From contig NC_134035.1 of NCBI RefSeq assembly GCF_964204645.1, positions 5,208,001 through 5,272,000 of the forward strand: a DNA stretch of 64,000 nucleotides. Reading direction: 5' to 3'. Positions 1,171 to 45,877 of this stretch are shown here, in pieces. Within the stretch, counting starts at the first letter, position 1; each line of letters opens with the position of its first letter. The notes under the pieces are model-generated. The model was given only the letters and a program-made list of their open reading frames with translations, ran no database searches and was not told the DNA's origin. This DNA is from Tubulanus polymorphus. Taxonomy: Eukaryota > Animalia > Nemertea. The position numbers and the translations under genes were made by a program.

Positions 1171-1199
1171 GGTGATCAAAATAGGTGATGAGGGACGCC

Positions 1200-5509: not shown

Positions 5510-5745
5510 CAAGTGAGAGCACCCGATTCAACACACTGTCCCGTGAGAGGACCAGACTCAACACACTGTCCTGTGAGAGGACCCGATTTTAAATACTGTC
5601 CCGTGAGAGGACCCGATTCAACTTACTGTCCCGTGAGAGGGCCCGGTTTCAAATCTGTCGCGTGAGAGGGCCCGATTCAACACACTGTCCCGTGAGAGGA
5701 CCCATTTTAAATACTGTCCCGTGAGAGGGCCACTGTTTCAAATCT
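5510..5745 (+). repeat. ~30-bp minisatellite (CTGTCCCGTGAGAGGACCCGATTCAACACA), about 8 units
   Basis: Directly visible tandem units. Confidence 0.9.
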
Positions 5746-5845
5746 GTTTCGAGTTAACTAGTGTTTTAAACGTTTTTGAACCTTTTTTGCCAAGGTTAAG
5801 ACAGGGGGCATAGAACTTTAAATGGATCAATAATGATTAAACCTA

Positions 5846-5943
5846 GGGCCCGGTTTTATAAACCGGTATTCCTTTAACCATGGGGCTGATCCAATTGAGT
5901 TAACCCCCGGATTAAAGGTGATACTAGTCTATAAAACCGGGCC
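5846..5943. mobile_element. PIF/Harbinger-like MITE (GGCCCGGTTTTATA TIRs); copies at ~33502-33599 and ~53109-53248
   Basis: TIRs GGCCCGGTTTTATA/TATAAAACCGGGCC flanked by TAG...TAG. Confidence 0.7.
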
Positions 5944-6029
5944 TAGATGTTTTAGAAATAATCGTTTTTAGCAGTTGCATGAAACCATTGTAATTAGAAA
6001 TTGGCCGACGCAGAATTGTTTGATTTTGT

Positions 6030-9000
6030 GTGTCAACAAATTATATATTTTTCAGTTCAGAAGTATGCAAGTCGCATTTGATCAATGCCTTAGCGTCGCG
6101 TACGATTAACTTAACCACGACCGTGACGACCAGGACGTGACCAGATATACATTGTTAACTTGAATCAGTTGGAAATATATGCTGTCATACGGAAGACGTA
6201 TAGCCTTACGGTTTAGTTTTTGAGATTTCGGAATATTTCCTCAAAGGAGCTGCAACTAAAAAATATGGAATTTCTTTGGAATACGCGTTCATCTGAACTA
6301 TCAACTTATCGTTCACAGCTGGATAAACTGCAACGATCAGTCCGAACTCTTACCTTAGAATAATCGGCGAATGAATGCTCAATTTCGGTGAAGATGGTGA
6401 CGCTTAGAAATCTGTAAGGAATAATACCCTTGTGCAATATCGGAACATAATAATCAGATGGTGTATCGAACAATGCGCGTGTTCATTTGAATAATAATCA
6501 AACGCGATCGCTTTGAGATGAAACAATGACGTACGTTACATTACGAGCGAGATTGATAATTTATTTTCAAACCGCGGTTGTAAAGTGGATTCTTGTTTGT
6601 TGTTTGTAAAATGATTGCGCAATTAGGAAATGCTCTATTCCCCTGGCATTAACTCGAACGTCAAAATCCCATCGATCACATCTTGATAAAACTGCAGCAA
6701 TCAGTGTATGAATTGATGATATGACATAAACTTGTGTAATATCGGGATATAATAAGATACTCAGTGATTGGAATAATTATCAAGTGTAGTAATTAAAAAC
6801 GTTAATGAGATATTGTATATTTTCATTAATTCAATTGTTTAGCGTTGATAAAGACTGATTTATTCTATGATATCGAGGTGAGTCGGATTCATGTTTATTC
6901 TTCTTTAATTCATTCATTCGCGATTGACCATAAAAAAACAAATATATCATAATCAATATTTTGTATTAGTATTTCGTTGTCGTTATTGTTCTATTCACTT
7001 GCCAGTTCAAAATCGAGCCGAAGCCACCCCTTCTCCAGGGCGGGCACGGAGAGCAGCCTAGACGCGAGAACGGACCGATACTCGCTTGCCAGGGCAAAAA
7101 GGGGTCAAGAAAGGCCAAAAAACGCGGGACCGGACCAATACTCACTTGCCAGGGCAAAAAGGAGCCAAAAAGGCCATTTTCACCCTAGGAAAGGCAGCCA
7201 ATATGCGGGACCGGACCTATACTCGCTTGCCAGGGCAAAAAGGAGCCAAAAAGGCCATTTTCACCCTAGGAAAGGCAGCCAATATGCGGGACCGGACCTA
7301 TTCTCGCTTGCCAGAGCAAAAAGGAGCCAAAAAGGCCATTTTCCCCCTAGGAAAGGCAGCCAATATGCGGGACCGGACCTATACTCACTTGCCAGGGCAA
7401 AAAGGAGCCAAAAAGGCCATTTTCACCCTAGGAAAGGCAGCCAATATGCGGGACCGGACCTATACTCGCTTGCCAGGGCAAAAAGGAGCCAAAAAGGCCA
7501 TTTTCACCCTAGGAAAGGCAGCCAATATGCGGGACCGGACCTATTCTCGCTTGCCAGAGCAAAAAGGAGCCAAAAAGGCCATTTTCCCCCTGGGAAAGGC
7601 AGCCAATATGCGGGACCGGACCTATACTCACTTGCCAGGGCAAAAAAGAGCCAAAAAGGCCATTTTCACCCTAGGAAAGGCAGCCAATATGCGGGACCGG
7701 ACCTATACTCGCTTGCCAGGGCAAAAAGGAGCCAAAAAGGCCATTTTCACCCTAGGAAAGGCAGCCAATATGCGGGACCGGACCTATACTCGCTTGCCAG
7801 GGCAAAAAGGAGCCAAAAAGGCCATTTTCACCCTAGGAAAGGCAGCCAATATGCGGGACCGGACCTATACTCGCTTGCCAGGGCAAAAAGGAGCCAAAAA
7901 GGCCATTTTCACCCTAGGAAAGGCAGCCAATATGCGGGACCGGACCTATACTCGCTTGCCAGGGCAAAAAGGAGCCAAAAAGGTCATTTTCCCCCTAGGA
8001 AAGGCAGCCAATATGCGGGACCGGACCTATACTCACTTGCCAGGGCAAAAAAGAGCCAAAAAGGCCATTTTCACCCTAGGAAAGGCAGCCAATATGCGGG
8101 ACGGACCTATACTCGCTTGCCAGGGCAAAAAGGAGCCAAGAAAGGCCAAAAAAGGCGGATCCGGACCTCTAGAATGCGGCACCGGACCAATATTCGCTTG
8201 CCAGGGACAAAAGGAGCCAAAAAGGCCAATTTCCCCCAAGAAAAGCAGCCATGACGCGGGACCATCAGAAAGGAATGAATAAAACAATCATATCAATCTT
8301 TATGAAATACTAATTATTATTCTTTTGTTTATTTTGCATCATACAGGAATTAATTCAGAAAGAAGAAACATGAATCCGACATAACGTCAAGTTTGAAAGA
8401 ATTCATTAAATAAACCTTACGAAAAATGTCTCACCAAAGGTTTATTAATTAGCGATCACGTCATTGTACGATACACTGATTAACAGCTTATTGTATCCTG
8501 ATATTAGAACAAGTTTATATTTCTTGCAGTTATTCCAAATCGAACATCTATTATCATAAGTTTTTGAAATTCATGTTTATCCAGATGTGAACGGTGAGTT
8601 TGAATGGACGACAAATAGGAATTCAGCTTACCCCCAAGTCTGAAAACAGATTGATTCTAATTAACCTGGAATCATAAGGCTCACTAATCGCCTCACAAAC
8701 ATTTTATCAATAAGCGATCACACTTGATTATCCGATGATCATTGTTCAATACACAGACTATCAGCGTATTACATCCCGATTTTAGAACAAGTTTATTCTT
8801 TTAAGACTTCTTAAGCGTCACCGAAATCGAGAATCCAATCTACGATATCATCAGCTCTAACACTGATCGGTGCGGTTTATCCAGGTGTAAACGATGAATT
8901 CCAATTTGTCTTGTTGAGTCGCGAATTCCCGTTCCAGAAACCTACGTACGCATTTTCTTGCAGCTCCGGAGTCAATGTCTTTATTCTCCGCACATACATA

Positions 9001-9280
9001 CTGATAGTGCAGCATACAGATACGAACGACAGTTTTTTTAAGTCTGATTTAGTGAGTTCCAAAAAATTTGATCCAATGTATTTTCTCGCAGAGTCGATAT
9101 CCTAAATCTATACAAAACTGTACGTGTGTCTCGAATGACAGCCGATATATCTCTAACTGATGTACAGAATGTATATATAGGCTAATCACGTCCCGGTCAC
9201 GGTCATGGTTCCAGTTAGTCGTGCGCAACAGGACACTGTTCAGAAATTGCATAAATGAAAAATGTTTTTATTATGTCAAA
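6030..9280. mobile_element. Fold-back element: diverged inverted arms (~6030-7000 and ~8275-9280) around an 81-bp tandem array
   Basis: Colinear motifs shared in inverted orientation (e.g. ACCRYGACCGTGAC, TTTCGGTGA/GACGCTTA, GTCGGATTCATGTTT); no transposase ORF; termini not resolved. Confidence 0.65.
7060..8262 (+). repeat. 81-bp satellite array, about 14 units
   Basis: Unit ACTCGCTTGCCAGGGCAAAAAGGAGCCAAAAAGGCCATTTTCACCCTAGGAAAGGCAGCCAATATGCGGGACCGGACCTAT; 27-aa periodicity in the ORF track. Confidence 0.97.
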
Positions 9281-10062
9281 AAGTGTTTCAGAAAGAAATC
9301 ATCATTCCGAAATAGCGTTCCGCATCAGTAATTAGGGTTAGGGATATGAACCCCACCCGTCATTCGGTAATAGCAGAGCAAAACATGAGATGAATAGAAG
9401 AAAAAAGCTTTCCATTTCATTCGGTTTTCCAATGGACATGGGTGGTTCAAATTCATACGATCATTTATAGCAGAAATCTCTCCATTCTTGACAAACATTC
9501 ACAATCCAGAAATGAATGTTAGAGTTATTTTTTGCCTTAACAACGAATTCATTCCACACCATATCTAAAAGTCGACAAACCATATGATGGTCTTCATGAA
9601 CTGCGTATGAATGCACAAGGAGAGCAATCCTGTTAGAATCAAATCTGGCCTAATATAATTCACAAAGTGACATTATCATCATTTATTTACTTTTCATTTT
9701 CGTTCTTTATTATAAAAAATATATAATGGTATTTTTGTTTTTTATGCAACAGTATATACGTACGATCACAGTGGAAAAACACACATAAATCAGAGTTTTG
9801 CTTAAAGCCGTTATCTTAAAATCTGAGTTAGAGTTAACTCTGAACTTACAATTCAGGATCCAGTTCCACAGTTGTGAGTTAAGTTAAAATCAGTTCATTT
9901 TCAATGAGTCAAATCTTAACTCTGAACTGTGGAACTGGGTCCAGCTCTACAGTCCCGAGTTAGAGTTAACTGCGAAGTGATCGAACTCATGCGTCAAATT
10001 GCATCCCAATGAAACGATATTCTCTCGACGACTAATTCCTATGTTTAGAAATCGCTGTATCG

Positions 10063-10308
10063 TCATAGATACGTAATAGTCGTCGAGTTTGATGCTATCG
10101 AATTCCAACTCGAAATGATTTTCAAGTCATTCGCGTCGAAGCCACAGTCCGGAAATGAAACATCGGTTTCTGTCACCGACCGAGGGAGACGAGGGGTGTT
10201 GAAAGCCCGGTGCTGACCGGTCGGGTCGCTGTATCGTTTTTGAACGTTCGCGTCTCCGTTCGATATCGAATATATTCCGTCCTCCGATGGCTCGATGAAG
10301 ACTTTCCC
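10063..10308 (-). pseudogene. Duplicated fragment of the SLCO last exon (81 codons + stop), followed on the minus strand by a copy of its 3'UTR
   Basis: Translates GKVFIEPSEDGIYSISNGDANVQKRYSDPTGQHRAFNTPRLPRSVTETDVSFPDCGFDANDLKIISSWNSIASNSTTITYL*, versus 27649-27894 with 5 aa differences and no indel. Confidence 0.9.
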
Positions 10309-11054
10309 GGTGATACTGCTGCCACCCCGATACCACTGATACCAGTGATACTATGGTTCTATGGATGCTTTCGGCCCGTGTTGTATGCGGTCGTAGTGTT
10401 CTGTTCTCATTGTATTGTCCCATGACGCCCTCTACATAGCCGCCATCTTGAAACGGTGTTCTGGTACACCATCGAACAACCGGAATTTCCTTGCAGACAT
10501 ATCCAATATGGCTGCGCCCATGGATCATGGATAAGTTTTTCAAGTGTCGATTCAAAGATTCACGTGGTGTTTTCAGCTGTAAATAGCTGTTGAAACACCT
10601 TGAACTGATAGATTCAGATAATATCAGTGTGTATCACACGTCTTATGAATTGTAGCAGTGTTGTCACCTCATAACACTCGATAACGAAGCGTTCAAACTG
10701 AATATCGAAATCTTCCCGTCTTCCCGACCCGGCCCATACTCACACTGTCACTACTACACCGCCACTGGTGATCGTGCACCTGCTACTACACCAATATTAA
10801 TTATTTTTACCCAGACGACTACTGCTATGCTACAATAGTCTATGTGCAGCGTATCACCCCTTCATTGTCCTGTTTGTTTGAAAGTAAATCGTTGAAGCCC
10901 CATTTTAACCCCTTGCCAGGTGAATCTGCAAAAATAAACCATATGGATTACTCTAATTTGACAGCCTGCCATACTTAAGATAATAAAACATACTGAAAAC
11001 AGTAGTCAGTGTACTGTGTATTTACATGAGAATCGTATAATTGCCTAGTGAAAA

Positions 11055-14000
11055 ATGTTGACTGTTAAATCACGCATTCTCAGTCGACTGGTCAGCTGTA
11101 GACCTGTGGTCAGGGGTGGACCAAATGAACATAGATTTATCAGTCAATCTACAGTCGGTTGTAAGTTTACGTCGCGTCAAACCAGGATTCTTAATAGCGA
11201 ATGCTCGTACTTTTCTTCGGTGTCTATTCATAATCACCGGTTCATCGTTAAAGCTAGCTGTATTGATTTGAGCCGGCAGCCCGCGCGTTATTACTCGATC
11301 GCCGAGCGATTTTCGTTCGATAGAAATCCTCTAAAAACGTACGTTCGTCGTTTGATGGACGAATACTCGGCGTTGACGCGTAAAATGAAGCGGTTAGATT
11401 CGTACGGCGATCGCGAGCAGACGGAATTGTGCGAACGCCACGCCGACGTTCACCCGATAGCCGAACGCGTTATAGCTCTCGAGAAAAGACGATCGGATAT
11501 TCAGGAAATATCGAAAATGATGGAAGGTTAGAATTGGATAAATGATGATTATATCTAATATTTGATTAGGATTTTGTATTTTGATTTAGGCTATACAACT
11601 CTCCGTCTCCTTGATGACTCTATATTTCTGTAGTTGTGAGTGAAATATGACTTAAATTTTAGGATTGATAAAGAAGGTTCGTTGAGTAAACATGTTAAGC
11701 GGGTTTAGAATAAATAACGAGACAATGTAAGTTAACTATTTTTTTGACGCACAAGCTTTCACTACTTATGTATAGACTAATGTATAGAAGCTTCATCAGG
11801 TTCATTCACCTGATGAAGCTTCTATACATTAGTCTATACATTATTGGCAAAAGCTCGTGCACCAAATTAATAGTTAACCTATATAGGATTGATTAAGTTA
11901 GAATTTCATAGATATTGCTTCATTGTCAATGTTTAAATGCTTAAGTCAAATTTCAATTGATGACTGTCGAATTGGGTTCAGTTTAATAGAACTTCAACTT
12001 TGCTGTTTACTGGAACTATTAATTGAGTTATAACTAATGATTTTCTTTCATAGATTTGACTTCTCCTGAAGATGATGAAATGATGGAAAGTGCTCGAGAA
12101 GAAATTGATCAGTTAGAAAAACAATGCGACCAACTGAAACATGAGGTACAGTGAGAAAATTAAAAACCTGTCGAACTTCAATGAGGACTCCGTGCCACCA
12201 GCTATCCCGCTAAATGGCGTGCGTATCAGTGCGACAACCCTGTCCAAATCTAGTTCATTTTCAATAAACTTACATCTAGATTTTTAGCCTTCCTCATCAG
12301 AAATAAGGCAAATCACTCCACTTGATAAACTCAGATGATCTTAAGGTTCATATATAGGGTGAATTTTACTAATCACCATTCAAAGAATTTTGGAAATTAT
12401 GGATAGATTTTAAATTGAATCTGAGAAGAAATCCGGGAGTTGTTGTCTGAAAGCACACTAGCGAACTTGGTGGATCCTCGCTTGCCACAAGTGGAATCCT
12501 TGATTGCCACAGTCGAAAGTCCTCATTGATTCTAGCTTTGTAGCTTGAAAATCTAATTTCACACCAGGAAACTGTGAAAATTTAAAACCGCTAAAATATC
12601 AATATGTTTTCTGATGTTAGGTGTTGTTAATGCTAGTGCCGCCATCTAGATTGGATGAAAGCGACATTGTTTTGGAAGTTTCCGCCGGAGTCGGAGGTAA
12701 AGAAGCGATGATATTCACCGGAGAGTTGTTCGAAATGTATCAACAGTTGGCGGCGTGGAGAAAGTGGGCCGTCGATGTCATCGACTACGATAGAACAGAA
12801 TTAGGTAGGTCAGTAGTGATGTTTTAAGGGTATTATTCATCAAAGCGGATGCATCAGAAAAAAGAATACACCCCTTGAAGATGCACCTTTCATTCTAGTA
12901 ACACAAGGTTACCACTAATCTGGAAGTCAGAATTTTCTTTTCTTTAGTCAGGGACTTTTGTAAAAAAGATAAAAATCAGGAAGTCGGGGAAATAAGTTGA
13001 GATTGCTAGGTCATGCATAAAATCAAGAAGTTTCCGTCTATACCTTAATTGATTGGATTCTTAGCGAATCAAGTCAGAGAAAACAACATGCATATCGGAC
13101 AATAGTCAGGGAAAAAGTAAGTCAAATGAAAATGGCGCCACCCTTTAACAGTGTAGTGTGTAATTGCAGGAGGTGTCAGGAAAGCGAGTTGCGTGATTCG
13201 CGGACGCGGAGTTTATAAATATTTGAAATACGAGAGCGGAATCCATCGCGTACAGAGAGTTCCTGTAACCGAACGCACCAGTCGACTACATACGAGTACA
13301 GCTGCGGTAGCTGTTTTACCTACGCCTACTGAGGTGAGTTACGGCCGGAGCGTTACCGCGCAGATATTCGCGGCGTGAACTCAACGAGGCATCGATTCAT
13401 TTCAGATTGATGTAGTATTGAATCCTCGTGATTTGAAGATCGATACGTTCCGCGCGAGCGGTAAGGGAGGTCAGCATATTAATACTACAGACAGCGCTGT
13501 ACGCATTACACATGTTCCTACTAGTGAGTAGTCTTTCAATTTCTCCCCCCCCCCCCCTGATTGATAGGGAGGAGATGTCTGGAACCTGCTAATAATACAG
13601 GGATGAAAATCTTCCGACCATAGACGGATTTCCGACCTTTTCTAACATTTTCTTTATTCCTGAGAACAGTGTAAATCACCTCAATCGCTTTAATCACCTA
13701 AATCGCGGGCGTCACATCGGAGCGCTCCGTAGTTAGGAGTGCTCCTTAAGACGGTTTTCGGCAGTTATTAGCACAACTGTGGAGTCGGAGAAACCAATAT
13801 GGCGTCTCATTCAAAAAGCGGCTCTAATTCAGGTCCAAACTATTAACATTTTGACCAAAAGGAAGTAAGTTTTTTGGCTAAAAGTTACTGATTTTTGTTC
13901 CCCAAAAAAATTCTTTTTTTTTTGAAAATATTTTCCGACTTTTTCAATATTTTCAATGTTTTCATCCCTGTAATAATACCTGATGTGATGGTTTGATAGT

Positions 14001-14402
14001 TGTATAAAGAAAAAACTGCCGCAATTTTCTTTTTTTGTCGTAGATACCGTCGTCGAGTGCCAAACGGAACGTTCGCAGATAAAAAACCGCGCGACCGCGA
14101 TGAACGTGTTGCGTTCACGGATCTATCGAACTCAGTTAGAACGCGCCGAGCGCGAACGCCGGTCGCAGCGCAAACTGCAAATAGGTTCGGTCGATCGGTC
14201 GGATAAGATACGCACGTACAACTATCCGCAAGATCGGATCACCGATCATCGAATCGGCGAAACGGTCTATAACGTTCGCGAGTTCTTGAACGGCGGCGAA
14301 TCGTTGAACGCGATGATCGACGTTCTGCACGAAGAATCGAAGGCGGAAGTTTTACTCGAACGTTTAGAAGACATCGTCGAAGAGAACGAAACTAAATCGT
14401 GA
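11055..14402 (+). CDS. MTRF1L: Mitochondrial peptide chain release factor 1-like (mtRF1a); exons 11055-11526, 12054-12145, 12621-12804, 13170-13333, 13406-13523, 14044-14402
   Basis: Arg/Ser-rich presequence, [26 protein letters not shown] (PxT motif), [18 protein letters not shown] (GGQ), [16 protein letters not shown]; splice phases consistent. Confidence 0.93.
11731..11878. repeat. Intronic fold-back with a perfect ~34-bp inner stem
   Basis: ATGTATAGACTAATGTATAGAAGCTTCATCAGGT / ACCTGATGAAGCTTCTATACATTAGTCTATACAT with a short loop; degenerate outer arms ending GTTAAC. Confidence 0.85.
13598..13970. mobile_element. hAT-like MITE in MTRF1L intron 5
   Basis: TIRs CAGGGATGAAAA / TTTTCATCCCTG with exact 8-bp TSD TAATAATA. 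Confidence 0.85.
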
Positions 14403-18900: not shown

Positions 18901-21900
18901 GACGATTGTTGACACTATTCGGGCGCTGTTATATTTTTGAATTGTGACAGTTGATGATCTAGCGCTATTCGGTTGGGTGAACATTGTTGCGATCACAGGG
19001 GCTCGTATCATAGTTGCAGGTAATGTAAAAATGATAATCTGTTAATCCAATGTATATAGTATATATAAAATAACGTTATTTTATATATACTATATACATT
19101 GGATTAACAGATTATCGTTTTTACATTACCTACAACTATGATACGAGCCCCTGTGGTTGCGATGATCGCTTAGCTGCCTAACGCACCATCTCATAACCCT
19201 GAATATACCTCAGAACCACAATCTATAGGGCCTAGCATACATTGACACTGCGATTGGAGACAACTAGTTGCCAGGCAGTTTTCGGCGCATGGGAGGAACT
19301 AGCTGAATACAAGTTGCTCCAATTTGTGAGCAAGCTTTACGACTGGTTAGCGTCCATCTAGCCAGTTGCCCATGTTCTACTTTTGAGCGACCAGTTACTG
19401 TCATATGCGTCGATGTGAGCGCTCCATAATCAACAACACGTGGTTGCAATTGACTAAAACAAAGCAATTTGACACGTGACATCAGATGCCCCCAAGAATA
19501 TTTGCTAGATAACACATCTCAGTTGCGGTTGATGTACGCGCTATGGACCTAGAGACTGGCATGAGCCATGCAGTTGCTGGTTTTTACTAGATTTTCGATG
19601 TGGATATGATCAGTTGCTAGTCCGATGTACGCTAGGCTTAAGAATACTCTCTTATTTTACTACTAGGATAGATCAGTTTTGATTATCGTTAAACAGATGA
19701 AATCGTTGTCCGAACGACTGCAGCGATTTCGGTAGCAAAAACCAGGACATTTGCGAATCTCCCTTATCAAGTATAATATTCTTCATCTGTCTATAATTTC
19801 ATGTAACGTAATTTCATCGGATTATGTCCAGTAGGATTTCTTTCGTGTACTCAAACTTTTCGAATGGAAATATTTTTTTCTTATTGACTTGTACTTTGTA
19901 GTCAAAGATAATGTTTGTCACTACGTAGCCACCCGTTGATTGATTACCTTGTATCGCTCACTCAGTAATCCAGTTTCTTACCCGACAGATTCGATAAACC
20001 CGTTTCAATGTTTTATCTAGACGTAAAACATTATTATTCCTTTGTATAAGCGCCGTTTGTTATCTCGACTTGTTGAGATTAACTTACACATCACTCGCAC
20101 CCGATATCTGTTGACATCCACTTTAACCGTCCCAGCCCCTGCCTTAAACAAACACACTTATACTTTATTAAAAAAAGTAGTCATATCACGTAATCTATTT
20201 CGGGACGAGAATTCCTTGACAATGACAATTGAATATCATCTGAGCCAACCATTTTTTATCTTATCTTAATGAAGTCTCATAAATCATCGTATGACCCTGG
20301 CCAACGACTGCCATTTTCTTGATTAGAAATGTTCTAAGTTAGAATTCGATTCTTTCGTTGAAAAGTTAGGTGCTCAAACTATTCGCAGTGTTCTTATCAC
20401 GCGTCGATAGAACGTATCTGATAAATTAACGTTGAAACCCAGCTCCGTTATCGAAGTTAATATTTACACACGACGCGTTGTCACTTAGCGGGTTTTTTTT
20501 TCCTACTCATTGCAGTTATCGACGCGACAGATGGTATAATTCGTTGCCACGACGACGATGACCGGGCAGACGTCCTCCGAGGTCGGATTCTAACAATGGC
20601 AGACGCGGAACGGACGACGACGACGAATGTCGGTCCGATTATCCACGTTCACGAAGACTCGTTATACTCCGATTGTGAACAGAAGGAGAACGGCGGTTTT
20701 ACGAACGAAGCGTTTACCGACGACAGTGGCTCGGCCGGAGCGTCGCGTGAACCGGGAGTTACCGCGACGGCTTCACCCGTCAAAAACCCGCCGACAAAAT
20801 GTGATAAGATTAATACTCGGTGCGGCTGCGGAAGCTGCACGCCGGATTGCATGCAGAAATGCGCGCATCCGATGTTATTCCTGGTGGCGGTAAGCGCGGT
20901 CGTGTTCGTGCAGTCGTTCCTCGCGTCCGGCTATCAGAACAGCGTCAACACGAGCGTCGAACGGCGCTTCGACTTATGGAGTAAAGAATGGGGACTCGTG
21001 TTGAGTAGTTACGACTTCACGGCGATGCCGGCGTCGATTCTCGTCAGTTTCTTTGCGGCGAAACGCAATCGCAGCCACTGGATCGGCTACGGCGTCGTGA
21101 CGCTCGCCGTCGGTTCCATCACGTTCGCGTTGCCTCATTTCATCGCTGGTCCGTACCGAGTCTCGACTGAGGCTGCGTCCGGCGTCGCGGCGAGAAACTC
21201 GTCGAATTTAGTCTGCGACGCGTCGTCTAAACGCGACACGAGCTGCGGAGAGAAATCGCCGGAGACCTGGGCATTGGCCATGTTGTGTTTGGGACAACTA
21301 ATCCTCGGACTCGGCGTCGGACCGCTTTACACGCTGGGACCGACTTATATATACGACAGCGTCAAACGCAAAGTCTATGGACTTTATATTGGTAAGATCT
21401 ACTTATCCTGACAAGGTGGCGCTACTGACCTGGAAACCTGGGAAATTCGGGGAATCAGAGATATCTAGAAAAATATTAGGGACAAACTCTGGGAATTTGA
21501 CAAATTTTGAAAAGAAAACCTGGAATTTGGATATGCTATTAACTATGCTTTTCTTTATCAATACATGATTCATTGATAAATGAATGAATTGCAACATTTT
21601 AAACCCAGAAATTTCGTTTGTTTGATCACATGGAAAATCAGGGAAAACTCAGGATTGTAAATAGGCAGAAAGTAGTCATCCTGTACAAGCTAATCCAGGT
21701 TAAAACAGTTTTACTATGTATTTAACCAATCCCTGATATTTGTAGGTATATTCTACTCGATGGTTGCTGTAGGACCGGCGTGCGGGTTTCTGGTTGGGGC
21801 AGCGTTGCTTTCATTCTACGTCGATCCCGGATTGAAGCCGGTTGGAATGACGGAGAGCGACCCGCGTTGGGTCGGCGCCTGGTGGGTCGGCTACGTCATC

Positions 21901-24900
21901 GTGTCCGCTTTATTGTTGCTGACGTCGATTCCGTTGTTTCTGTTTCCGAAGAAGTTACCGCCGCGACATTCGAAACGCCGATGGAAGGAAGTGTTCCCCG
22001 ACGAGGATGGGGATGACGGCGCCATTTTCGCTAATTTCGGCGACGATTGTAAAGGTAAGAAAATATAACACAAATGCAGCGTACGGTTTCATTTTGAAAA
22101 CTTGGGCCATAAGTACCCCGGTAGTAGATTTTCGATTTTTTCTTTTTCCCTTGATGCAAAGTTTAACCCATTAATCACTAACTGCAAACTTTAACCCATT
22201 AATCACTAACTCATGCTCTCTCCTCTCCATTATTTGAACCTGGTGACATTGTCAGGCTCTACCACAGCCTTACCCAGCAGACCAGGGACGAGCTGCACAG
22301 TCGTAATCTAAGTCCAACAGTGGTCTCACAGAATTGTTAGATTGACTATAGTACTATTTGATCTTCGACTGGTCTTATTTCTTAGCTTCAGGTGTGCAGG
22401 GCAGGCAGCTAATTGCAATAGTATTGGGGTTTAAATACCATCGAAGGACAAACGTCTCATGTTGTCATATTTTGGTCATATTAACATAATAACTCGCACC
22501 TGTTGCTTTTAACTGTAACTTTTTTCTAACGTTTTCTAAACATTTTGCAGGCTTTCCGCGAAGAGCCAGTCATCCTGTCATACGACAGGAGACTTGCTTA
22601 CAAAAACAAGATTTTCGGAAAAGTATGGAAAATAACATTTCTGCTGCTTGCGCGATCATCTCTTCATTATCTATTTCCAGAAAAGATCGGGATTCAGTTT
22701 CACAGTTCCGCAGTTTAGCGGTTAAATCATTTACCTATATGTAACTGTAGGGACAAATCCTGATCCATAACTGTGGAACTGGTTTCTATTTCCAGTTCCA
22801 CAGATGTTACATATTTTAAATTTCTGTGTTCTGATTGTAGTTTTAGATTGTTGTGAAACTCCGTAATTAGTTGACCTGAACTGCTCCATTTACATGACGC
22901 TTTATTCTTGGTGAAAGACATAACTTCGGGGTTTATTGGCAAAGCCATCTTTACTGGAAATAGTTTAACTCTGCAGCTTATTTGTTCGCAGCGATGAGAT
23001 ATTTTTGCTATCATAGCAAAGCAAAACATTTCACCTGGTTCGATAGTTAAAGATTTAAAGGGTATGCTTCTATAAATCTGATTAAGAACTCTTGCTTGCT
23101 TGTATCGTTATATCGTCGGGCCTGCTGGAAAAATATCTAGCGTGTTCTTTCATCTCTTGCTTTGTTCATTACGCCAAGTATCGCGATTCATAGAGTAAAA
23201 CGATATCCTTCAAAGTAGTGTTGGTTTTATAGACTAAGCCATGAAATTTATTTCTTGTATTTGGGTATAGTTAGCAATAAGTACCATGTGATTTTCATTT
23301 GTGTCATGAAAAAGTTTGAGAAGCTTTCTTGTGTAAAAGCAGTTAGGGTCGATGGAGAAGTATTGCTTGAATTTGGTTTGACTGCGGCTTAGAGTTTTGA
23401 ATTATTGTGCATGAAATACTGGGGCTAAGGGATGAACTAGAACCGGTATTCTGTCTATAAAACCAGTCACGTATGTGATAGATTTTGCCTTAATAACTGG
23501 TATTAATGCTTGTTATTGTGCTTATTAGCTTATTAACATGTATGAATACTGCGCGCTGTACAATTGTGAAGAATTGTATTTAAATACAACCAGTGGAAAA
23601 TGTTACAAGTGCCCCAGCTGTGACATTATATACTAAAGTATCAAAAAAATATATTTCTAGTTTTGTAATCGGCTTTTCCATTCATGACCTTATTATGAGT
23701 GTCACATGAAAAAATGTCTGTGACATTGTTTATCTGTTTATCATTAGCATATTTCCTCTGATTTTGGCTGATGTTTTGATACTTCGGTTGTTTCCTAGTA
23801 CTGTTATATTCCATAGACCGCCAATTTTTTCCATAGACCGCCAATTTTTTGCCCTTTTTTCATGGAAAAGTCTGATCCAAATTTCGTATTCACTGTGGCC
23901 TGGGATTGAACTATTGTGGTGTTAAGACTGAAAAAAAATCAATCGGACAGTCAAGGCAGGACCAGCCTGCAAATATCCTGGTTCTAGCGTCAATCTATGG
24001 ACCAGTCTTATGATTTAAAACAACTTAGGTGATGACTGCAATAGGGTCCATGTCTCTAGTTAGGTTCCACTAAAATTGGTGGTCTGGTAGTCAGCAAAAC
24101 CTTCCGAGCGTGCCCAGTCTGGTCCAGAATTTTCTGATACAGTGGCGCTGTTATGGGTTCAATTGTTCAAAACAGAAGTTGACCTAAACAAATTTCTTAT
24201 CATTTCTACTTTCAGATTTTCCTCGCGGTATAAAAGCGTTATTCACGAACCCCGTCTGGCTGTGTATAACGTTAGCGGCGGTGATGGAACGCAGTATAGT
24301 GTCGGGATTCGTCGCGTATGTCAGTAAATATCTTCAGGTCGAATTCCACGTTCCCAGCTCACAGGCTAACATCATGACAGGTAAATGTCCGATCGATTTC
24401 AGATGCAAAGTGACACACATGAAATGCCCAATGCTTTCTAGACTTAGTAAAGACTTAGGACTTCTACCATTCCCTTCTCCGCTGCTAGCAAATCAGACAA
24501 TCTTGGCTGCAAAGCAGAAGGATCAGCTATAATTGAACTCTATGAAACCAGATTGGTATTAACCATTGTTATGGTTATGATTTCTCGCTTAAAACTCTTT
24601 CTGTTTGAAAAACACTATGAATTTGTTGATCAACTCATACGCCATCTAACGTGATTCACCAAAAACGATCCTAACTCTCTATCAAACGAAGATACACAAT
24701 AATATCGCCAATGTTACGGTCGGTCGTATCATATCTTAGATTTTTTACGGATTTTCTTGCAGGTTTAGTGTTGATACCGAGCGCTTGTTTCGGTATAATA
24801 ATCGGCGGTATAATACTCAAACGACACCCGATGAGCAATTCGGCAATTTTCAAATTCATCTTGATTTTTGCGACGATATCGATGTTGATTGTGGTGGGTG

Positions 24901-27894
24901 CGTTTTTCGTCAAATGCGACGAGTTGCCGTTTGCCGGAATAACAATCAATCACAATGGATCGGGCAGGTCAGTTCTCGAGTTAACCTGACTTCTTCTAAG
25001 ATTGATACAATCTGTACCAGAACAGAGGGGGTATTTTTTAATTCACCATCTATCGTTTGAGTTAAGAAACTAGCCAACCGTACCAGTACGGTTTTGGCAG
25101 CCAAGTGATGGGAAATATCGAACGTACCAGTACGTGTTTGGCAGGCAATGAGTTAACGATATCAGGTTATAGCGTGGGCTCGTAGGACGTCGTAATATTT
25201 AACTATCGTAAAATGCTCGTAACATTTTATTCGTATTTCCACAGCATCGAAGCGTCTTCCATCAATGTCTCGTCGAGTTGTAACATCAACTGTAAATGTA
25301 ACACCCGTCATTATAATCCGGTTTGCGGTTACGATCAAATCACGTATTTCAGTTCGTGTCACGCCGGCTGTACCGATATAAATACAACCGGACACGTAAG
25401 TATCGTACAACGACCTTCGTAGCCTTGCGTCAAAAGCTTCGACATCAGCGAAATAATCCTGTATGCTGATATTGTAGAGTTATAAGGTATATTATCTAGT
25501 AGATCAATTGGATTTGAAATTGTATTGAAATGATCTTTAAATATAATGTTTTAGTATTTCACATTTAATTATCAACATTTTTATAGTTATATGTACAGGA
25601 TGTATATACACCCAGCATTTGTATTTAGTCAACTAATCTTTTTATCGACTTTCTTGTTGTCTAATTAACTGGTTAGCATCTGCTAATTATACACTAGTCT
25701 CATAAACACATGTCATCATCAACTTATTGAATAATTATCTGCAAATAGTTTTCATAAAAACCATTGGTTATAACTATAGATTTTCCTGCAGACAACAGCT
25801 ACAGACTCTGGTTCTATAATCTACTTGATAAAATACCCTATAATATATTCAAATCCAATCTCTATAATCTACTTGATGATAAACCCTATGATACTAGTCA
25901 GATTAAAACCCACTATACGTGTGTGTACGCAATTCAAAAGATTAGAAAGGAAATTCATTTGTCATTGGAATCAGGAGAAATCAGATGATTAGACGTATTG
26001 GACTCGGATCGGTCTTATTAACTTTTCTCCACGTCTGACAGTGGCTATTCTACTACAATGCTCTTAGGCTCTTCTCATAGTCTATACAATAAACATTTAC
26101 ATTATAGAACGCTTCTAAAAGAAACTTGTTTCTTCTATTTCAATTGTGTTGAAACGTGACAATAACTTTCATATTTTATCTATCAATTATGGGTTTTTCT
26201 TTGATATAAAGATGGTGGATAGACAGACAGTCAGTAAATACTCAACTAATTTCGGGTTATCTGTTTATTTCAGAGTTTTCTATCTTGTGGCTGCGTTCAT
26301 ACTACTATGGCTACTGCTGTTACCGGTAAATGCCCGAGTTCTTGTCAGATGTTGTATCCATTTCTAGTCATACTGTTCTGTATGGGTTTCGTAGCGTCTT
26401 TGTGCCAAAATCCTGCCTTGATCATTACTTTATCGTACGTATTTTTCTGTATAAGATGTATCAGCATTTACAGTGTTTACAGGTGATGTTGATGTAGATA
26501 TATGATTTTGTTTGATTTTGTAGGTGTGTTAAAAAGAAGGATCGCTCGTTTTCGCTAGGAATGCAAGATTCTGTCGTGAGATTACTCGGTAAGTATTTTA
26601 CACTTCTATGACCATTAATAACAGTGTGAATAAAATCGAATTACTCTCAATCTGGAATAAGAAACCCCTTGAAGGTTCGAGAAATTTATTTACTTCTAGT
26701 ACTGCCTCATTTGTTACTTGATAAGGAAACTTATAAATTATATCTTGGATTCTTTGAAGGAGTTAGACCTGAAATTTGAAATGGGCAAATTTGGCAATGC
26801 AAGGGAAGCAAGTGCCAAACATTGGTGGGGGTTCTGGCAGCCCTCCAACAGGATATTTAGGAAAAAAGGGGGCATTTAGTATCTTTATCAGAGCCTATTT
26901 AGATTTATTTTTCATCTTTTTCAAATTTTCTTTGCAAAAATGATTTGACCGGACTTTTTGGAGGGTGTATTCGAATTTTGAAGGGGTGGACCAGTCCACT
27001 CTTGTTCACCCCCTAAATCTGTCTAGTGATGTCATTATTCCAATTCGCTGCGAGCAAGGTTGATTGCATTGAATTACTAGATAAACTGTATGAATCCCTG
27101 TTCAATTTAAGCACCTTTGGCGCCATAGAGCATTTTCCTGTAATGCACCTGCGCTTATGGAGCTCATATAGTTTCTCCGATTTTGATTAATTTTCTCTGG
27201 AACAAAACACATCTAAAGAAACTTCTATTCAGACAACACTTACTAGAGGAGCACATCTGAACTGTTTTAATAGGATACCTGCACTATATAAAACTTATTC
27301 ATTATTATTATAACAATTCTTCATATGACGTGTCTTCTTGATACTAAAAATTTGCTCGTATTATTTTCAGCGTATATACCATCACCGATCTATTTCGGTT
27401 ATCTATTCGACGGTCAGTGTTTACTGCGCGAGGAGATCTGCGACGGCAGCGGTTCGTGTTGGGAATACGATACTAAACGTTTGCCGTACGCGATATTCGG
27501 CACGGTGATCGCGCTGAAATGCGTCGGTATCGTTTTCATCGCGTTGGGATGGATGTTCTGTCAACGTGAAGACCGACAGAACGCCGAACAAAAACAGTCC
27601 GCCGCCAACAGCGACAAGTCGGAACCGAGTGCCGTACCTACGCGAAACGGGAAAGTTTTCATCGAGCCATCGGAGGACGGAATATACTCGATATCGAACG
27701 GAGACGTAAACGTTCAAAAACGATACAGCGACCCGACGGGTCGGCACCGGGCTTTCAACACCCCTCGTCTCCCTCGGTCGGTGACAGAAACCGATGTTTC
27801 ATCTCCGGACTGCGGCTTCGACGCGAATGATTTGAAAATCACTCCGAGTTGGAATTCGATAGCGTCAAACTCGACGACTATTACGTATCTATGA
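15905..27894 (+). CDS. Organic anion transporting polypeptide (SLCO/OATP family); exons 15905-15998, 20516-21391, 21746-22054, 24216-24380, 24763-24967, 25245-25395, 26274-26434, 26524-26588, 27371-27894
   Basis: CGCGSCTPDC N-terminal motif, SVERRFDL, OATP signature DPRWVGAWWVG, Kazal-like CNINCKC...PVCGYDQITYFSSCHAGC, AYIPSPIYFG...D..C; all splice phases join in frame. Confidence 0.92.
18209..18476. mobile_element. hAT-like MITE family (CAGGCCCGTGCCGAG-type ends); related copies at ~33917-34020 and ~39924-40276
   Basis: Imperfect TIRs CAGGCTCATGCCGAG / CTCGGCATGGCCCTG and shared internal GAACTGCCCCTCAAAA. Confidence 0.55.
18994..19155. mobile_element. 162-bp spacerless palindromic MITE with 8-bp TSD (P- or hAT-like)
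   Basis: Arms pair through the centre AACGTT (19072-19077) with 2 mismatches; GTTGCGAT at 18986-18993 and 19156-19163; termini CACAGG. Confidence 0.9.
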
Positions 27895-29395
27895 CGCTAC
27901 AGCGATTTCTATACATAGGAATTAGTCGTCGAGAGAATATCGTTTCATCAGGATCCAATTTGACGCATGAGTTCGATCACTTCGCAGTTAACTCTAACTC
28001 AGGACTGTAGAGCTGGACCCAGTTCCACAGTTCAGAGTTAAGATTTGACTCAGAGTTGACTCATTGAAAATGAACTGATTTTAACTTAACTCACAACTGT
28101 GGAACTGGATCCTGAATTGTAAGTTCAGATTTAACTCTAACTCAGATTTTAGAACGGCTTTAAGCAAAACTCTGGGCTGGTGCTAACTTAAACCCAGTGG
28201 TTAATGTACTCGTATTCATAGTCAATTTAAGTTAAACACAAGTCTAAATACTGAACCGTGGGGTTGATTCAACTATTAACCATTCGGGTTTAAGTATTTA
28301 ACTTAAAACAAATGTATTTGATAACTAACTTCATTTTAGACCAAGTTAGGGGGTTGTTTTTTTTTAAAGAAAATCAAAAGCTTTAGAAACGGTTCTGTAA
28401 ATGTAAATGTTACTCCAATCCAGTTTGTTGTCAATATTTTAAAGTTAGCAAAATTATTGTATCTCACTCAAAGACTGGAATTGAGAACTGGATCCAGGGT
28501 TATTGAAAATCGAAATGATTTCATCTGAAAACCGTATTATGTTCCAACAGAATACAATCATTTATGATAGAGAATAGCTTTAATGCTCTGTATAAAAATG
28601 CGCATTTATCATATTCAGTTTTATAATCGTGTTTCGTAAATGAGCCAACAGATAATGATAGCTATAGACGAACACCAAATGTTAGTCATTTCATTGTTGT
28701 CGAACTTGCTAGCTAATAAGGGGGTCGAAGGATACCACTATGTCCCCTGTCCGAGGTGATCCAAAAATTTGAGCAGATGTGGGTTTAGCGTATTAAGCGT
28801 TTTCCGAGATATAATGATAAGTCCGGAAAGTACAATATAAGTCTGGAATGTTGCTGAAAGTTCAATATCCTGTATCCACGACGTGAAGCTTGTTATTTTT
28901 ACTTGCGCGTGAATTTCAATCTATTTTTAGCGACGTGAACAATGTGTGAAAGACGAATCATTGAATGAAATTTCTTCGGGAAAAAGAATTTAATTCATAA
29001 AAATCTGTGCATTACGTACAGTAGTTTCTCGCAGACGCCGAAACAGCGATCGATAAATATTTGAATTGTGGTTGATTTATATGATGGATATCACTATCAG
29101 AATAGTTTCAAACACAAAGCGGGAGGGTCGAGACCCTATTAACCCCCCCCTTGGAACCACCCCTGTCAGTATGCATATCTGTTGGTACTAGAATGATATA
29201 TGTTTGTTCAGTAGTACATGTATAAGAATACAATTATGAATGTGATGCCCAGTGTTAATGATGATTGTTGCAGTTGTTTTCTAAACGGAAAATTATTTTT
29301 GATCAAATTGTTATTGATTTATGTGTGTTTTTCCACTGTGATCGTACGTATACACTGTTGCATAAAAAACAAAAATACCATTATATATTTTTTAT

Positions 29396-29401
29396 AATAA
29401 A
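29396..29401 (+). terminator. Candidate SLCO polyadenylation signal AATAAA (mirrored at 9706-9711 on minus)
   Basis: AATAAA ~1.5 kb after the stop codon in an AT-rich context. Confidence 0.4.
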
Positions 29402-30839
29402 GAACGAAAATGAAAAGTAAATGAATGATGATAATGTCACTTTGTGATTTATATTAGGCCAGATTTGATTCTAACAGGATTGCACTCCTTGTGCATTCAT
29501 ACGCAGTTCATGAAGATCATCATATGGTTTGTCGACTTTTAGATATGGTGTGGAATGAATTCGTTGTTAAGGCAAAAAATAACTCTAACATTCATTTCTG
29601 GATTGTGAATGTTTGTCAAGAATGGAGAGCTTTCTGCTATAAATGATCGTATGAATTTGAACCACCCATGTCCATTGGAAAACCGAATGAAATGGAAAGC
29701 TTTTTTCTTCTATTCATCTCATGTTTTGCTCTGCTATTACCGAATGACGGGTGGGGTTCATATCCCTAACCCTAATTACTGATGCGGAACGCTATTTCGG
29801 AATGATGATTTCTTTCTGAAACACTTTTTGACATAATAAAAACATTTTTCATTTATGCAATTTCTGAACAATGTCCTGTTGCGCACGACTAACTGGAACC
29901 ATGACCGTGACCGGGACGTGATTAGCCTATATATACATTCTGTACATCAGTTAGAGATATATCGGCTGTCATTCGAGACACACGTACAGTTTTGTATAGA
30001 TTTAGGATATCGACTCTGCGAGAAAATACATTGGATCAAATTTTTTGGAACTCACTAATTCAGACTTAAAAATACTGTCGTTCGTATCTGTATGCTGCAC
30101 TATCAGTATGTATGTGCGGAGAATAAAGACATTGACTCCGGAGCTGCAAGAAAATGCGTACGTAGGTTTCTGGAACGGGAATTCGCGACTCAACAAGACA
30201 AATTGGAATTCATCGTTTACTCTTGGATAAACCGCACCGATCAGTGTTAGAGCTGATGATATCGTAGATTGGATTCTCGATTTCGGTGACGCTTAAGAAG
30301 TCTTAAAAGAATAAACTTGTTCTAAAATCGGGATGTAATACGCTGATAGTCTGTGTATTGAACAATGATCATCGGATAATCAAGTGTGATCGCTTATTGA
30401 TAAAATGTTTGTGAGGCGATTAGTGAGCCTTATGATTCCAGGTTAATTAGAATCAATCTATTTTCAGACTTGGGGGTAAGCTGAATTCCTATTTGTCGTC
30501 CATTCAAACTCACCGTTCACATCTGGATAAACATGAATTTCAAAAACTTATGATAATATATGTTCGATTTGGAATAACTGCAAGAAATATAAACTTGTTC
30601 TAATATCAGGATACAATAAGCTGTTAATCAGTGTATCGTACAATGACGTGATCGCTAATTAATAAACCTTTGGTGAGACATTTTTCGTAAGGTTTATTTA
30701 ATGAATTCTTTCAAACTTGACGTTATGTCGGATTCATGTTTGTTCTTTCTGAATTAATTCCTGTATGATGCAAAATAAACAAAAGAATAATAAGTAATAT
30801 TTCATAAAGATTGATATGATTGTTTTATTCATTCCTTTC

Positions 30840-32392
30840 TGACGGTCCCGCGTCATGGCTGCTTTTCTTGGGGGAAATTGGCCTTTTTGGCTCCTTTTGT
30901 CCCTGGCAAGCGAATATTGGTCCGGTCCCGCATTCTAGAGGTCCGGATCCGCCCTGGCAAGCGAGTACAGGTCCGGTCCCGCATATTGGCTGTCTTTCCT
31001 AGGGTGAAAATGGCCTTTTTGGCTCCTTTTTGCCCTGGCAAGCGAGCACAGGTCCGGTCCCGCATATTGGCTGCCTTTCCTAGGGTGAAAATGGCCTTTT
31101 TGGCTCTTTTTTGCCCTGGCAAGTGAGTATAGGTCCGGTCCCGCATACTGGCTGCCTTTCCTAGGGTGAAAATGGCCTTTTTTGGCTCTTTTTTGCCCTG
31201 GCAAGCGAGTATAGGACCGGTCCCGCATACTGGCTGCCTTTCCTAGGGTGAAAATGGCCTTTTTGGCTCTTTTTTGCCCTGGCAAGCGAGTATAGGTCCG
31301 GTCCCGCATATTGGCTGCCTTTCCTAGGGTGAAAATGGCTTGTTTGGCTCTTTTTTGCCCTGGCAAGCGAGTACAGGTCCGGTCCCGCATATTGGCTGCC
31401 TTTCCTAGGGTGAAAATGGCCTTTTTTGGCTCTTTTTTGCCCTGGCAAGCGAGTATAGGACCGGTCCCGCATACTGGCTGCCTTTCCTAGGGTGAAAATG
31501 GCCTTTTTGGCTCTTTTTTGCCCTGGCAAGCGAGTATAGGTCCGGTCCCACATATTGGCTGCCTTTCCTAGGGTGAAAATGGCCTTTTTGGCTCTTTTTT
31601 GCCCTGGCAAGCGAGTATAGGTCCGGTCCCGCATATTGGCTGCCTTTCCTAGGGTGAAAATGGCTTGTTTGGCTCTTTTTTGCCCTGGCAAGCGAGTATA
31701 GGTCCGGTCCCGCATATTGGCTGCCTTTCCTAGGGTGAAAATGGCTTGTTTGGCTCTTTTTTGCCCTGGCAAGCGAGTACAGGTCCGGTCCCGCATATTG
31801 GCTGCCTTTCCTAGGGTGAAAATGGCCTTTTTTGGCTCTTTTTTGCCCTGGCAAGCGAGTATAGGACCGGTCCCGTATATTGGCTGCCTTTCCTAGGGTG
31901 AAAATGGCCTTTTTGGCTCTTTTTTGCCCTGGCAAGCGAGTATAGGACCGGTCCCGCATACTGGCTGCCTTTCCTAGGGTGAAAATGGCCTTTTTGGCTC
32001 TTTTTTGCCCTGGCAAGCGAGTATAGGTCCGGTCCCGCATATTGGCTGCCTTTCCTAGGGTGAAAATGGCTTGTTTGGCTCTTTTTTGCCCTGGCAAGCG
32101 AGTTCAGGTCCGGTCCCGCATATTGGCTGCCTTTCCTAGGGTGAAAATGGCCTTTTTTGGCTCTTTTTTGCCCTGGCAAGCGAGTACAGGTCCGGTCCCG
32201 CATACTGGCTGCCTTTCCTAGGGGGAAAATGGACTTTTTGGCTTCTTTTGCCCCTTTTTGGCTCCTTTTTGCCCTGGCATGCGAGTATAGGTCCGGTCCC
32301 GCATACTGGCTGCCTTTCCTAGAGGGAAAATGGCCTTTTTTACTCCTTTTTGCTCTGGCAAGCGAGTATCGGCCCGTTCTCGCGTCTAGGCT
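30840..32392 (-). repeat. 81/82-bp satellite array, about 18 units, inside the second fold-back copy (~29825-33415)
   Basis: Reverse complement of the 7060-8262 unit, with array-specific variants. Confidence 0.97.
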
Positions 32393-34953
32393 GCTGTCCG
32401 TGCCCGCCCTGGTGAAGGTGTGGCTCCGGCTCGATTTTGCAAGTGAATAGAACAATAACGACAACAAAATACTAATACAAAATATTAATTATGATATATT
32501 TGTTTATTTATGGTCAATCGCAAATGAATGAATTAAAGAAGAACAAACAGGAATCCGACTCACCTCGATATCATAAAATAAATCAATCTTTATCAACGCT
32601 AAACAATTGAATTAATGAAAATATACAATATCTCATTGACGTTTTTAATTATTACACTTGTTATTATTCCAATCACTGAGTATCAGCTTATTATATCCCG
32701 ATATTACACAAGTTCATATCATCGATTCTTGCACTGATTGCTGCAGTTTTATCCAGATGTGATCGATGGGATTTTGACGTTCGAGTTAATGCCAGGGGAA
32801 TAGAGCATTTCCTAATAGCGTAATCATTTTACAAACAACAAACAGGAATCCACTTAACAACCGCATTTTGAAAATAAATGATATCTTATCAATCTCGCTC
32901 GTAATGTAACATAAAGTCATTGTTTCACCTCAAAGCGATCGCGTTTGATAACTATTCCAATGAACACGCGCATTGTCCGATACACTATCTGATCATTATG
33001 TTCCGATATTGCACGAGTTTATTCCTTACATATTTCTAAGCGTCACCATCTTCACCGAAATCGAGCATCATTCGTCAATTATTCTACGATAAGAGTTCGG
33101 ACTGATCGTTGCAGTTTATCCAGCTGTAAACGATGAGTTGATAGTTCAGATGAACGCGTATTCCAAAGAAATTCCATACATTTTAGTTGCAGCTCCTTTG
33201 AGGAAATATTCCGAAATCTCAAAAACTAAACCGTAAGGCTATACGTCTTCCGTATGACAGCATATATTTCCAACTGATTCAAGTTAACAATGTATATCTG
33301 GTCACGTCCCGGTCGTCACGGTCGTGGTTAAGTTAATCGTACGCGACGCTAAGGCATTGATCAAATGCGAGTTGTATACTTTTGATCTGAAAAATATGAT
33401 ATAATTTGTTGACACATAAAATCAAACAATTCTGCGTAGGCCAATTTCTAATTACAATGGTTTCATGCAACTGCTAAAAACGATCAATTCTAAAACATCT
33501 AGGCCCGGTTTTATAGACTAGTATCACCTTTAATCCGGGGGTTAACTCAATTGAATCAGCCCCATGGTTAAAGGAAAAGCGGTCTATAAAACCGGGCCCT
33601 AGGTTTAATCATTCTTGATCCATTTAAAGTTCGATGCCCCCTGTCTTAACCTTGGCAAAAAAGGTTCAAAAACGTTTAAAACACGATTTAACTCGAAACG
33701 CCCTCTATCGATTCTGTTCAAATTAAGAGAAACCCGTTAGATTGCAACACACCATCAAAAACTCTTTTTCACAACATAGAGAATATCAAATCTCCCAAAA
33801 TGTCATGGCCTTAAAATGCATGAATTCAAAACCTATTCGAAATTATTAGAAAAATATCACGGAAGAGTTGACATGGAACAGATAGTGGCGGGGTAGAAGC
33901 CCGTATAGCCTGACGGCAGGTCCGTGCCGAGGGGGTTCGGGGGTAGCGAACGAACCCCCTAAAAAGCGTCCTTTTTCTTGAAATAGAACTGCCCCTCAAA
34001 AAAGCTCGGCACGGGCCTAGACGAATATACCGCTGTGGGTTTGTCATTGATTCAGGTGGAACTAAACGCGATTTATGAGGGGATATAACTCTAAATAAAT
34101 GCACACTTTTGTATCATTTCGTAGTTGTGTAATAAGTTCAATTAGCTGAACCCTCTTTAATCAAGGGTATAGCGCAACTAAGTTTTTTTTGTTCGCTCGA
34201 ACCGTCCGAACCTCCGGACCACAGCGACGTTGGCGAATCGCAAAAACTAAGATAGGGAAGGCATTTGATAAAACGGACGTCGCATTCACAAATACGGAAA
34301 CAATTCAACGAACGAGTCTTATCTGAATACGGAATCTATCGAAAAAAGAAACTAATCTCAAGTCCAGAGAACATCACGAGGTTACAATGGAAGATTGCTA
34401 GTTCATGTTATTGATAGACACGTGCATTTTGTGCGCCATTATGCGTCATCAGGAAATTGATAAATCTTTTTCTTTCTTTATGCCTACGAATTTCTGCTGT
34501 CATTCAACGATACCCATCTTTAACTATCATCCCATCAACCGCTGCTGCCTATGACGTATTTTTAACGTGTATAAATCGGCAGTCAATTTCGACCACTCGT
34601 TCACAAACTGTTTCATCATGATGAGGGCTGTAACATATTTCTCGTTATTTCTGACGATATGCCTCGAAGGTACGTATATATAAACGGTACTCCGAAATCC
34701 GAAATGAATAGAATCTTGAATGGAATACAAAATCTATCAGACTTATAATTGCATCTAACACATTTCATACCGCCGCCATTAGGCTATCAACGTTGATTTT
34801 ATTATTCTTCATTTTCAAACTCATTCAAACAACTAAACTAAGGGGAAAATGAAATCCAGGTGATAATGCGTGTAGCGGCAAGAATGAGACGGCTAAACCT
34901 ATAATTTGAAAGTAAACTCTTATCTTAACTAATTGTAGTTATTGTTTCTATAG

Positions 34954-45745: not shown

Positions 45746-45877
<132 letters not shown>

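Follow-up and report, generated by a model that had tools for sequence, protein, structure and literature searches.

Known Systems of Inverted Repeats and Inverted Duplications

The human FLNA and EMD genes on the X chromosome are flanked by inverted repeats of 11 kb, which are one example of the low-copy repeats that mediate recurrent inversions. Other human polymorphic inversions mediated by inverted repeats have been described (PMC3961182). Inverted duplications are also found at inversion breakpoints: they flank 17 of 29 inversions in Drosophila, where a staggered-break model was put forward (Ranz et al. 2007, PMC1885836). Lastly, the palindromes of sex chromosomes are kept by gene conversion (PMC8327919, PMC8981503). 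The locus described here is a 28-kb inverted-repeat unit of the nemertean Tubulanus polymorphus. It lies in a window of 64,000 nucleotides (nt), which is the whole stretch of DNA that was analysed (assembly GCF_964204645.1, contig NC_134035.1, positions 5,208,001 to 5,272,000; G000:C11:5208001-5272000, its contig being named C11 below). All coordinates are positions in this window, and genome-wide statements refer to the 268-Mb assembly, which has 77 contigs. Two arms in inverted orientation enclose a gene for an MTRF1L-like mitochondrial peptide-chain release factor and nearly all of an SLCO/OATP transporter gene, whose 3' end lies in the right arm. This unit is a real local inverted segmental duplication and is fairly young.

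Its closest relatives in kind are the inverted low-copy repeats that mediate recurrent inversions and the inverted duplications associated with breakpoints. Like the human repeats that cause inversions by non-allelic homologous recombination (NAHR) (PMC3961182, and the FLNA-EMD pair), the arms are inverted repeats of kilobase size, 95–99% identical, which enclose a few intact genes and carry signs of arm-to-arm conversion; an inversion between such arms is balanced and neutral for the genes. However, the arms described here are not as long and, except in a core of 1.5 kb, have diverged further; they belong to an invertebrate with a genome of 268 Mb, and they are known from the sequence of one assembly. 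As in the Drosophila duplications (PMC1885836), a segment is bordered on both sides by inverted copies of a sequence that was ancestrally unique and includes part of a gene, and the joints are non-homologous. Inverted arms, a spacer and evidence of conversion are also shared with sex-chromosome palindromes. The arms of these palindromes nevertheless hold genes and exceed 99% identity throughout, whereas here only 1.5 kb is homogenised (98.9% in the core, 95–96% in its flanks) and no intact gene lies in an arm.

The change is of an ordinary kind and involves no new mechanism, mobile element or regulatory switch; the enclosed genes are untouched. What the locus offers is a legible example of a local inverted duplication, in which source and copy can be told apart, the joints of the left arm carry microhomology and a putative conversion tract is bounded by heterologies. 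Since inverted pairs seed later inversions, the locus could also mark an inversion polymorphism in the species.

Structure of the Unit

Comparison of the window with itself delimits a left arm of 4,564 bp (5746-10309, minus strand) and a right arm of 6,052 bp (27648-33699, plus strand), which are reverse complements of each other. They are separated by a spacer of 17,338 bp, so that the whole unit spans 27,954 bp. The homology has sharp limits at all four arm ends. These coordinates are, to the base, those given by an earlier note on the window that had been made from the letters alone; the note had also placed an MTRF1L-like gene and most of SLCO between the arms, where the exons matching the Pfam families PCRF, RF-1 and OATP are indeed found. 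The pair is well above 1 kb in length and 90% in identity, is inverted and lies on one chromosome. There is no N in the window, and the assembly contains a single copy of each of the sequences next to the arms (10486-10700 and 33700-34700).

The homology is made of three collinear inverted blocks (5746-8263 with 33699-31137, 8154-9792 with 30953-29315, and 9791-10309 with 28174-27648), and the identity between the arms varies along them. In the outer block, 5746-7123 and 33699-32395 share 95.1% identity, gaps excluded; in the inner block (9791-10309 versus 28174-27648), the corresponding value is 96.1%. Between these two, a core of 1,529 bp (8264-9792 versus 30843-29315) reaches 98.9% identity with zero indels. 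This core contains 17 mismatches in 1,529 bp versus 83 in 1,807 bp for the flanks (Fisher p = 1.2e-9), and the Jukes-Cantor distances are 0.011 and 0.047, respectively.

The outer block is separated from the core by an 81-bp satellite, which counts 14.1 units in the left arm (7124-8263) and 17.8 units in the right arm (30951-32394). The core is separated from the inner block by a segment of 1,140 bp found in the right arm only (28175-29314). The longer right satellite and this right-only segment are the two sources of the difference in length between the arms.

Composition and Copy Number of the Arms

Genome searches tiling the arm found the whole arm at full length in only two copies, whereas some of its sub-parts are dispersed. 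The presence of only two entire copies beside dispersed sub-parts indicates that the arm is a composite host segment: a single block was duplicated, which comprises a gene end, its 3' untranslated region (UTR) and intergenic DNA containing old insertions. Its ancestrally unique host sequence comprises the tail of the last SLCO exon, the 3' UTR and the stretch 9243-9790; this stretch and the SLCO tail are found in the two arms alone. Conversely, two pieces, near 5846-5944 and 9847-9970 and each about 100 bp long, are members of small dispersed repeats resembling miniature inverted-repeat transposable elements (MITEs).

The largest sub-part is an older repeat, called here element C, which occupies 6009-9242 in the left arm and 29865-33438 in the right one. 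It measures about 3.2–3.6 kb and carries the 81-bp satellite in its middle. Diverged copies of it (72–88% identity) are nearly confined to contig C11, between 0.35 and 5.24 Mb, for example at 2.50, 3.23, 4.83 and 4.85 Mb (L043-L046). The other copies of the arm interior on C11 were considered as markers of SLCO paralogues; this was rejected, as there is a single OATP gene on this contig and the common part is element C. In the same way, the right-only segment of 1,140 bp is not one transposon insertion: it is a mosaic in which two small repeats are combined with unique DNA.

No credible gene was found among the open reading frames (ORFs) of at least 80 amino acids in the arms, which are satellite read-through ORFs and one ORF across the left inner junction. 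The length of the satellite unit is divisible by three, and spurious ORFs of at least 400 amino acids result from it. Rfam and tRNA scans of the arms detected neither structured RNA nor tRNA.

Junctions of the Arms

Both ends of the left arm abut fragments of transposons belonging to unrelated families. On the outer side lies an internal fragment of an element named TE-B (5379-5745, plus strand), which is truncated on both sides and whose right end touches the arm. TE-B elements are dispersed and about 6.5 kb long, and both their ends carry kilobase-long arrays of 30/60-bp units in inverted orientation (L035-L038, on contigs C1, C4, C5 and C9). The fragment shares about 90% identity with copies scattered over many contigs and maps about 350–720 bp inside the left end of the element (L036:2948-3316), without the terminus. 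It contains a tandem array at 5513-5728, detected by Tandem Repeats Finder (TRF), and the junction cuts the 30-bp array of TE-B mid-array, about 720 bp inside the element. The only TE-B ORFs of at least 150 amino acids are three of 157 amino acids each, 540 bp apart (L036:7168-8721); their position in the subterminal array makes read-through of this array their probable origin.

On the inner side, the arm abuts a terminal fragment of 173 bp from another element, TE-A (10310-10482, plus strand), which runs from the last 64-bp subterminal unit to the intact terminus ...GAACAACC. The junction cuts this last unit, and the interior of TE-A is missing there. TE-A is a dispersed non-autonomous element that measures 5–14 kb and has inverted ends about 175 bp long (...CACCGAACAACC); examples of it lie on contigs C8, C2, C7 and C9 (L023-L026). 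Its long subterminal arrays of 64-bp units repeat part of the terminal region, and its copy L025 has no ORF of at least 150 amino acids. A nesting of TE-A in TE-B, from which one deletion would have produced both flanks, was considered and ruled out, because no TE-B sequence follows the TE-A terminus.

Short microhomologies are present at each joint of the left arm: GT between the arm and TE-B at 5745/5746, CCG between the arm and TE-A at 10307-10309, and TG at the joint where the left arm skips the 1,140 bp. On the other side of the unit, the outer flank of the right arm (33700-34700) is unique DNA, and no TE-A or TE-B sequence was found from 33700 onward. No repeat spanning 33699/33700, which would prove the ancestral continuity of this junction, was found either.

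The outer ends of the unit show no direct repeat that could be a target-site duplication (TSD), the flanks being ...CAAATCT| and |GCCCTCTATCG. The arm ends, GTTTCGAG... and ...CTTTCCCG, have neither Helitron-type termini (5' TC ... CTRR 3') nor terminal inverted repeats (TIRs). The earlier note had already remarked on the lack of TSD and transposase, and the flanks and the arm ORFs agree with it on both points. Its argument for one duplicated block including host exon sequence, rather than two independent insertions, is likewise borne out by the copy number and by the 82 SLCO codons of the right arm described below. A dispersal of the whole arm at many loci, which it had named as the sign of a transduction, is not what the genome searches found.

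Probable Source and Copy

The SLCO gene allows the two arms to be distinguished. Its final-exon ORF (27325-27894) crosses the arm boundary at 27648, and its last 82 codons lie inside the right arm. Residues 11-53 of this ORF match positions 503-545, the final part of the OATP profile, and are followed by 136 more codons. The left arm carries a copy of the last 81 codons and the stop (10063-10308, minus strand), the frame of which is open. This copy starts mid-exon, with nothing in frame upstream. Since the SLCO frame passes from spacer to right arm without a break, this arm is probably the source and the left one the copy.

The codons of the two tails are consistent with this direction. They differ by six synonymous and five non-synonymous changes, a synonymous excess with p ~0.03 according to the author's own binomial estimate against a neutral expectation of about 1:3. 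This ratio suggests that the SLCO tail behaves as a coding sequence and hence that its continuity with the right arm would be ancestral.

Origin of the Left Arm

Repair by microhomology-mediated break-induced replication (MMBIR) or by fork stalling and template switching (FoSTeS), as well as other repair with templated insertion, is known to give outcomes of the type seen here. The left arm may have arisen from such a microhomology-mediated templated insertion or template switch, a proposal that has about an even chance of being right. In this scenario, a fork would first have stalled, or the DNA have broken, within tandem arrays that belong to two decayed transposons and lie between BBS2 and the release-factor gene. 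Repair would then have copied an ectopic template located 17–28 kb away on the opposite strand, and the block would have been laid down in inverted orientation 17 kb upstream. The copied block would comprise the end of the last SLCO exon, the 3' UTR and, downstream, about 5.8 kb of intergenic DNA in which the satellite-bearing repeat was already present. Three switches primed by microhomology would be involved: one into the outer end of the block, one across the 1,140 bp and one out of it, inside the SLCO exon. The sequence that formerly lay between the TE-B and TE-A fragments would have been replaced or lost. Since then, the arms would have diverged by about 4.7%, while gene conversion would have homogenised the 1.5-kb core to 1.1%.

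The locus resembles FoSTeS/MMBIR products in its inverted copy of a nearby segment, in the 2–3 bp of microhomology at every joint, in the skipped stretch and in the replacement of the target. It differs from them in that it would be a germline event, fixed or segregating in a wild animal and visible only after about 5% of divergence. If this origin is true, the unit would be a natural templated inverted insertion of several kilobases and of MMBIR type, with all three joints legible.

Several points weigh against a templated insertion. Ordinary end joining is also expected to leave such short microhomologies (2–3 bp), and an insertion of 4.6 kb is large for this mechanism. The far side of the TE-B fragment is truncated as well and broken transposon pieces are common in this region, so the argument from coincidence is not strong. 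One of the junctions could pre-date the event, and the 1,140 bp could have been deleted from the left arm at a later time. Furthermore, the direction of copying and the single event are both inferred from one assembly.

The earlier note had seen in the unit an inversion scar or a still-invertible cassette. In the first case, an inversion of 17–23 kb would have occurred through staggered breaks, one pair of which flanked the 4.6–6 kb block; this block would have been filled in and thereby have come to lie at either end of the inverted segment, and the orientation that the release-factor and SLCO genes have now would be derived. The architecture is compatible with this, since it is that of the Drosophila set (PMC1885836), i.e., inverted duplicates of ancestrally unique sequence with a gene fragment; SLCO is continuous with the right arm, as the model requires, and 10309/10310 is clearly a novel joint. 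However, the staggered-break model creates one new joint per arm (here 10309/10310 and 33699/33700), whereas both joints of the left arm are novel and cut transposon arrays. It also predicts the remainder of TE-A from 33700 onward, where it is absent, and it requires the left nick to have fallen, by coincidence, at 5745, where TE-B is truncated. Furthermore, the Drosophila duplications do not exceed 1.9 kb and have a median of 321 bp (PMC1885836), so that the 4.6–6 kb duplicate is 2–3 times as long as the longest of them. An inversion scar is thus possible but disfavoured, and we regard it as rather unlikely. An assembly artefact, in which an uncollapsed or chimeric haplotype piece was placed in inverted orientation, is improbable. 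The divergence of 1–5%, the indels and the differences in satellite length would fall within the allelic range of very heterozygous invertebrates, but two alleles would hardly show a core at 1.1% between flanks at 4–5%. False duplications are typically direct and located at contig joins, while this window has no gap and single-copy sequence lies next to either arm. The left-arm joints are also clean, each with microhomology to a different transposon fragment, and the copy starts mid-exon.

A mobile origin is very improbable. In this reading, a transposon of composite, foldback, Helitron or Pack type would have picked up the SLCO tail by capture or transduction, and each arm would be one of its copies. 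The repeats of the arm interior (element C and the MITE-like pieces) and the position of the left arm between two transposon pieces with their ends facing outward could evoke it. Yet only two whole-arm copies exist and they have no transposase ORF; neither the arms nor the 28-kb unit as a whole are flanked by a TSD, and the arms have neither TIRs nor Helitron-type ends. The stretch 5379-10482 is not a mobilisable chimera either, as the TE-B piece lacks a terminus and TE-A and TE-B are different families. A retrocopy was ruled out by the lack of poly(A), in addition to the lack of TSD and the two copies. It is still less probable, to the point of being hardly credible, that the unit is a programmed invertible cassette, a shufflon-like switch of the SLCO 3' end. 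The open frame of the left SLCO tail and its five amino-acid differences would fit such a switch, but neither a recombinase gene nor specific recombination sites were found, and a homologous inversion recreates the same gene structures while swapping at most five tail residues. With 11 codon differences in a young duplicate, the open frame can be explained by chance.

Probable Gene Conversion and Possible Ability to Invert

Besides its origin by templated insertion or otherwise, the pair shows an identity profile that suggests gene conversion between the arms in the 1.5-kb core. This core is bounded by the length-variable satellite on one side and by the 1,140-bp heterology on the other. Its high identity cannot stem from a younger insertion, since the core extends across the edge of element C, nor from constraint, since the other copies of element C are only 72–88% similar.

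Gene conversion would imply that the arms pair, and a crossover between paired arms could in turn invert the spacer. The arms are thus a plausible substrate for a homologous inversion of the spacer, and the second proposal of the earlier note, a still-invertible unit, gains plausibility from the 1.5-kb tract at 98.9%, which suggests an exchange of sequence between the arms. A flip of the spacer would give the same types of junctions, leave the release-factor gene and SLCO intact and swap the tail residues mentioned above, five at most; it would not be a functional switch. A stronger version, in which the arms would be an active NAHR substrate whose 17-kb spacer flips recurrently and is polymorphic, with ongoing conversion sustaining the 1.5-kb core, is rather unlikely. 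If it were true, the locus would be an invertebrate counterpart of the recurrent inversions of FLNA-EMD type.

Genes and Repeats in and around the Unit

Exons were searched singly and were not joined into spliced models. Product look-ups with two SLCO exon ORFs and a word search with the first release-factor exon matched no other assembly or relative, a negative without weight because their length window leaves out full-length proteins. The MTRF1L-like gene (11055-14402, plus strand) is intact in the spacer, with Pfam matches to PCRF (12621-12827 and 13193-13378) and RF-1 (14100-14402). The SLCO/OATP gene (20596-27894, plus strand), the only OATP gene on C11, was recognised by Pfam OATP matches on the ORFs 20596-21411 and 27325-27894. 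The SLCO protein ends in -T-Y-L (27883-27894), and the left copy has the same ending, which presumably fits a class I PDZ-binding motif.

To the left of the unit, 5' exons of BBS2 (656-1179, minus strand) were identified by BBS2_N matches on the ORFs 1033-1179 (profile 1-22) and 656-886 (profile 50-98), so that BBS2 and the release-factor gene are arranged head-to-head. The succession of BBS2, MTRF1L and SLCO is not known from the human genome. To the right, VCIP135 lies at 49-57 kb on the minus strand. Two exon matches to Peptidase_S8 (36940-37158 and 43086-43349, plus strand) are weak and below the Pfam cut-off; both cover the same region of the profile (114-180), and there may be two tandem subtilase genes on this side. 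ARAGORN and Rfam agree on a tRNA-Arg(ACG) at 59202-59276 (plus strand).

The window also contains a tandem array of a 26-bp unit (3328-3737, 15.8 units) and an (AT)63 microsatellite (45748-45874). Finally, an inverted pair of small repeats of about 100 bp, 89% identical, is located on both sides of the BBS2 5' region (298-393 and 5220-5321).

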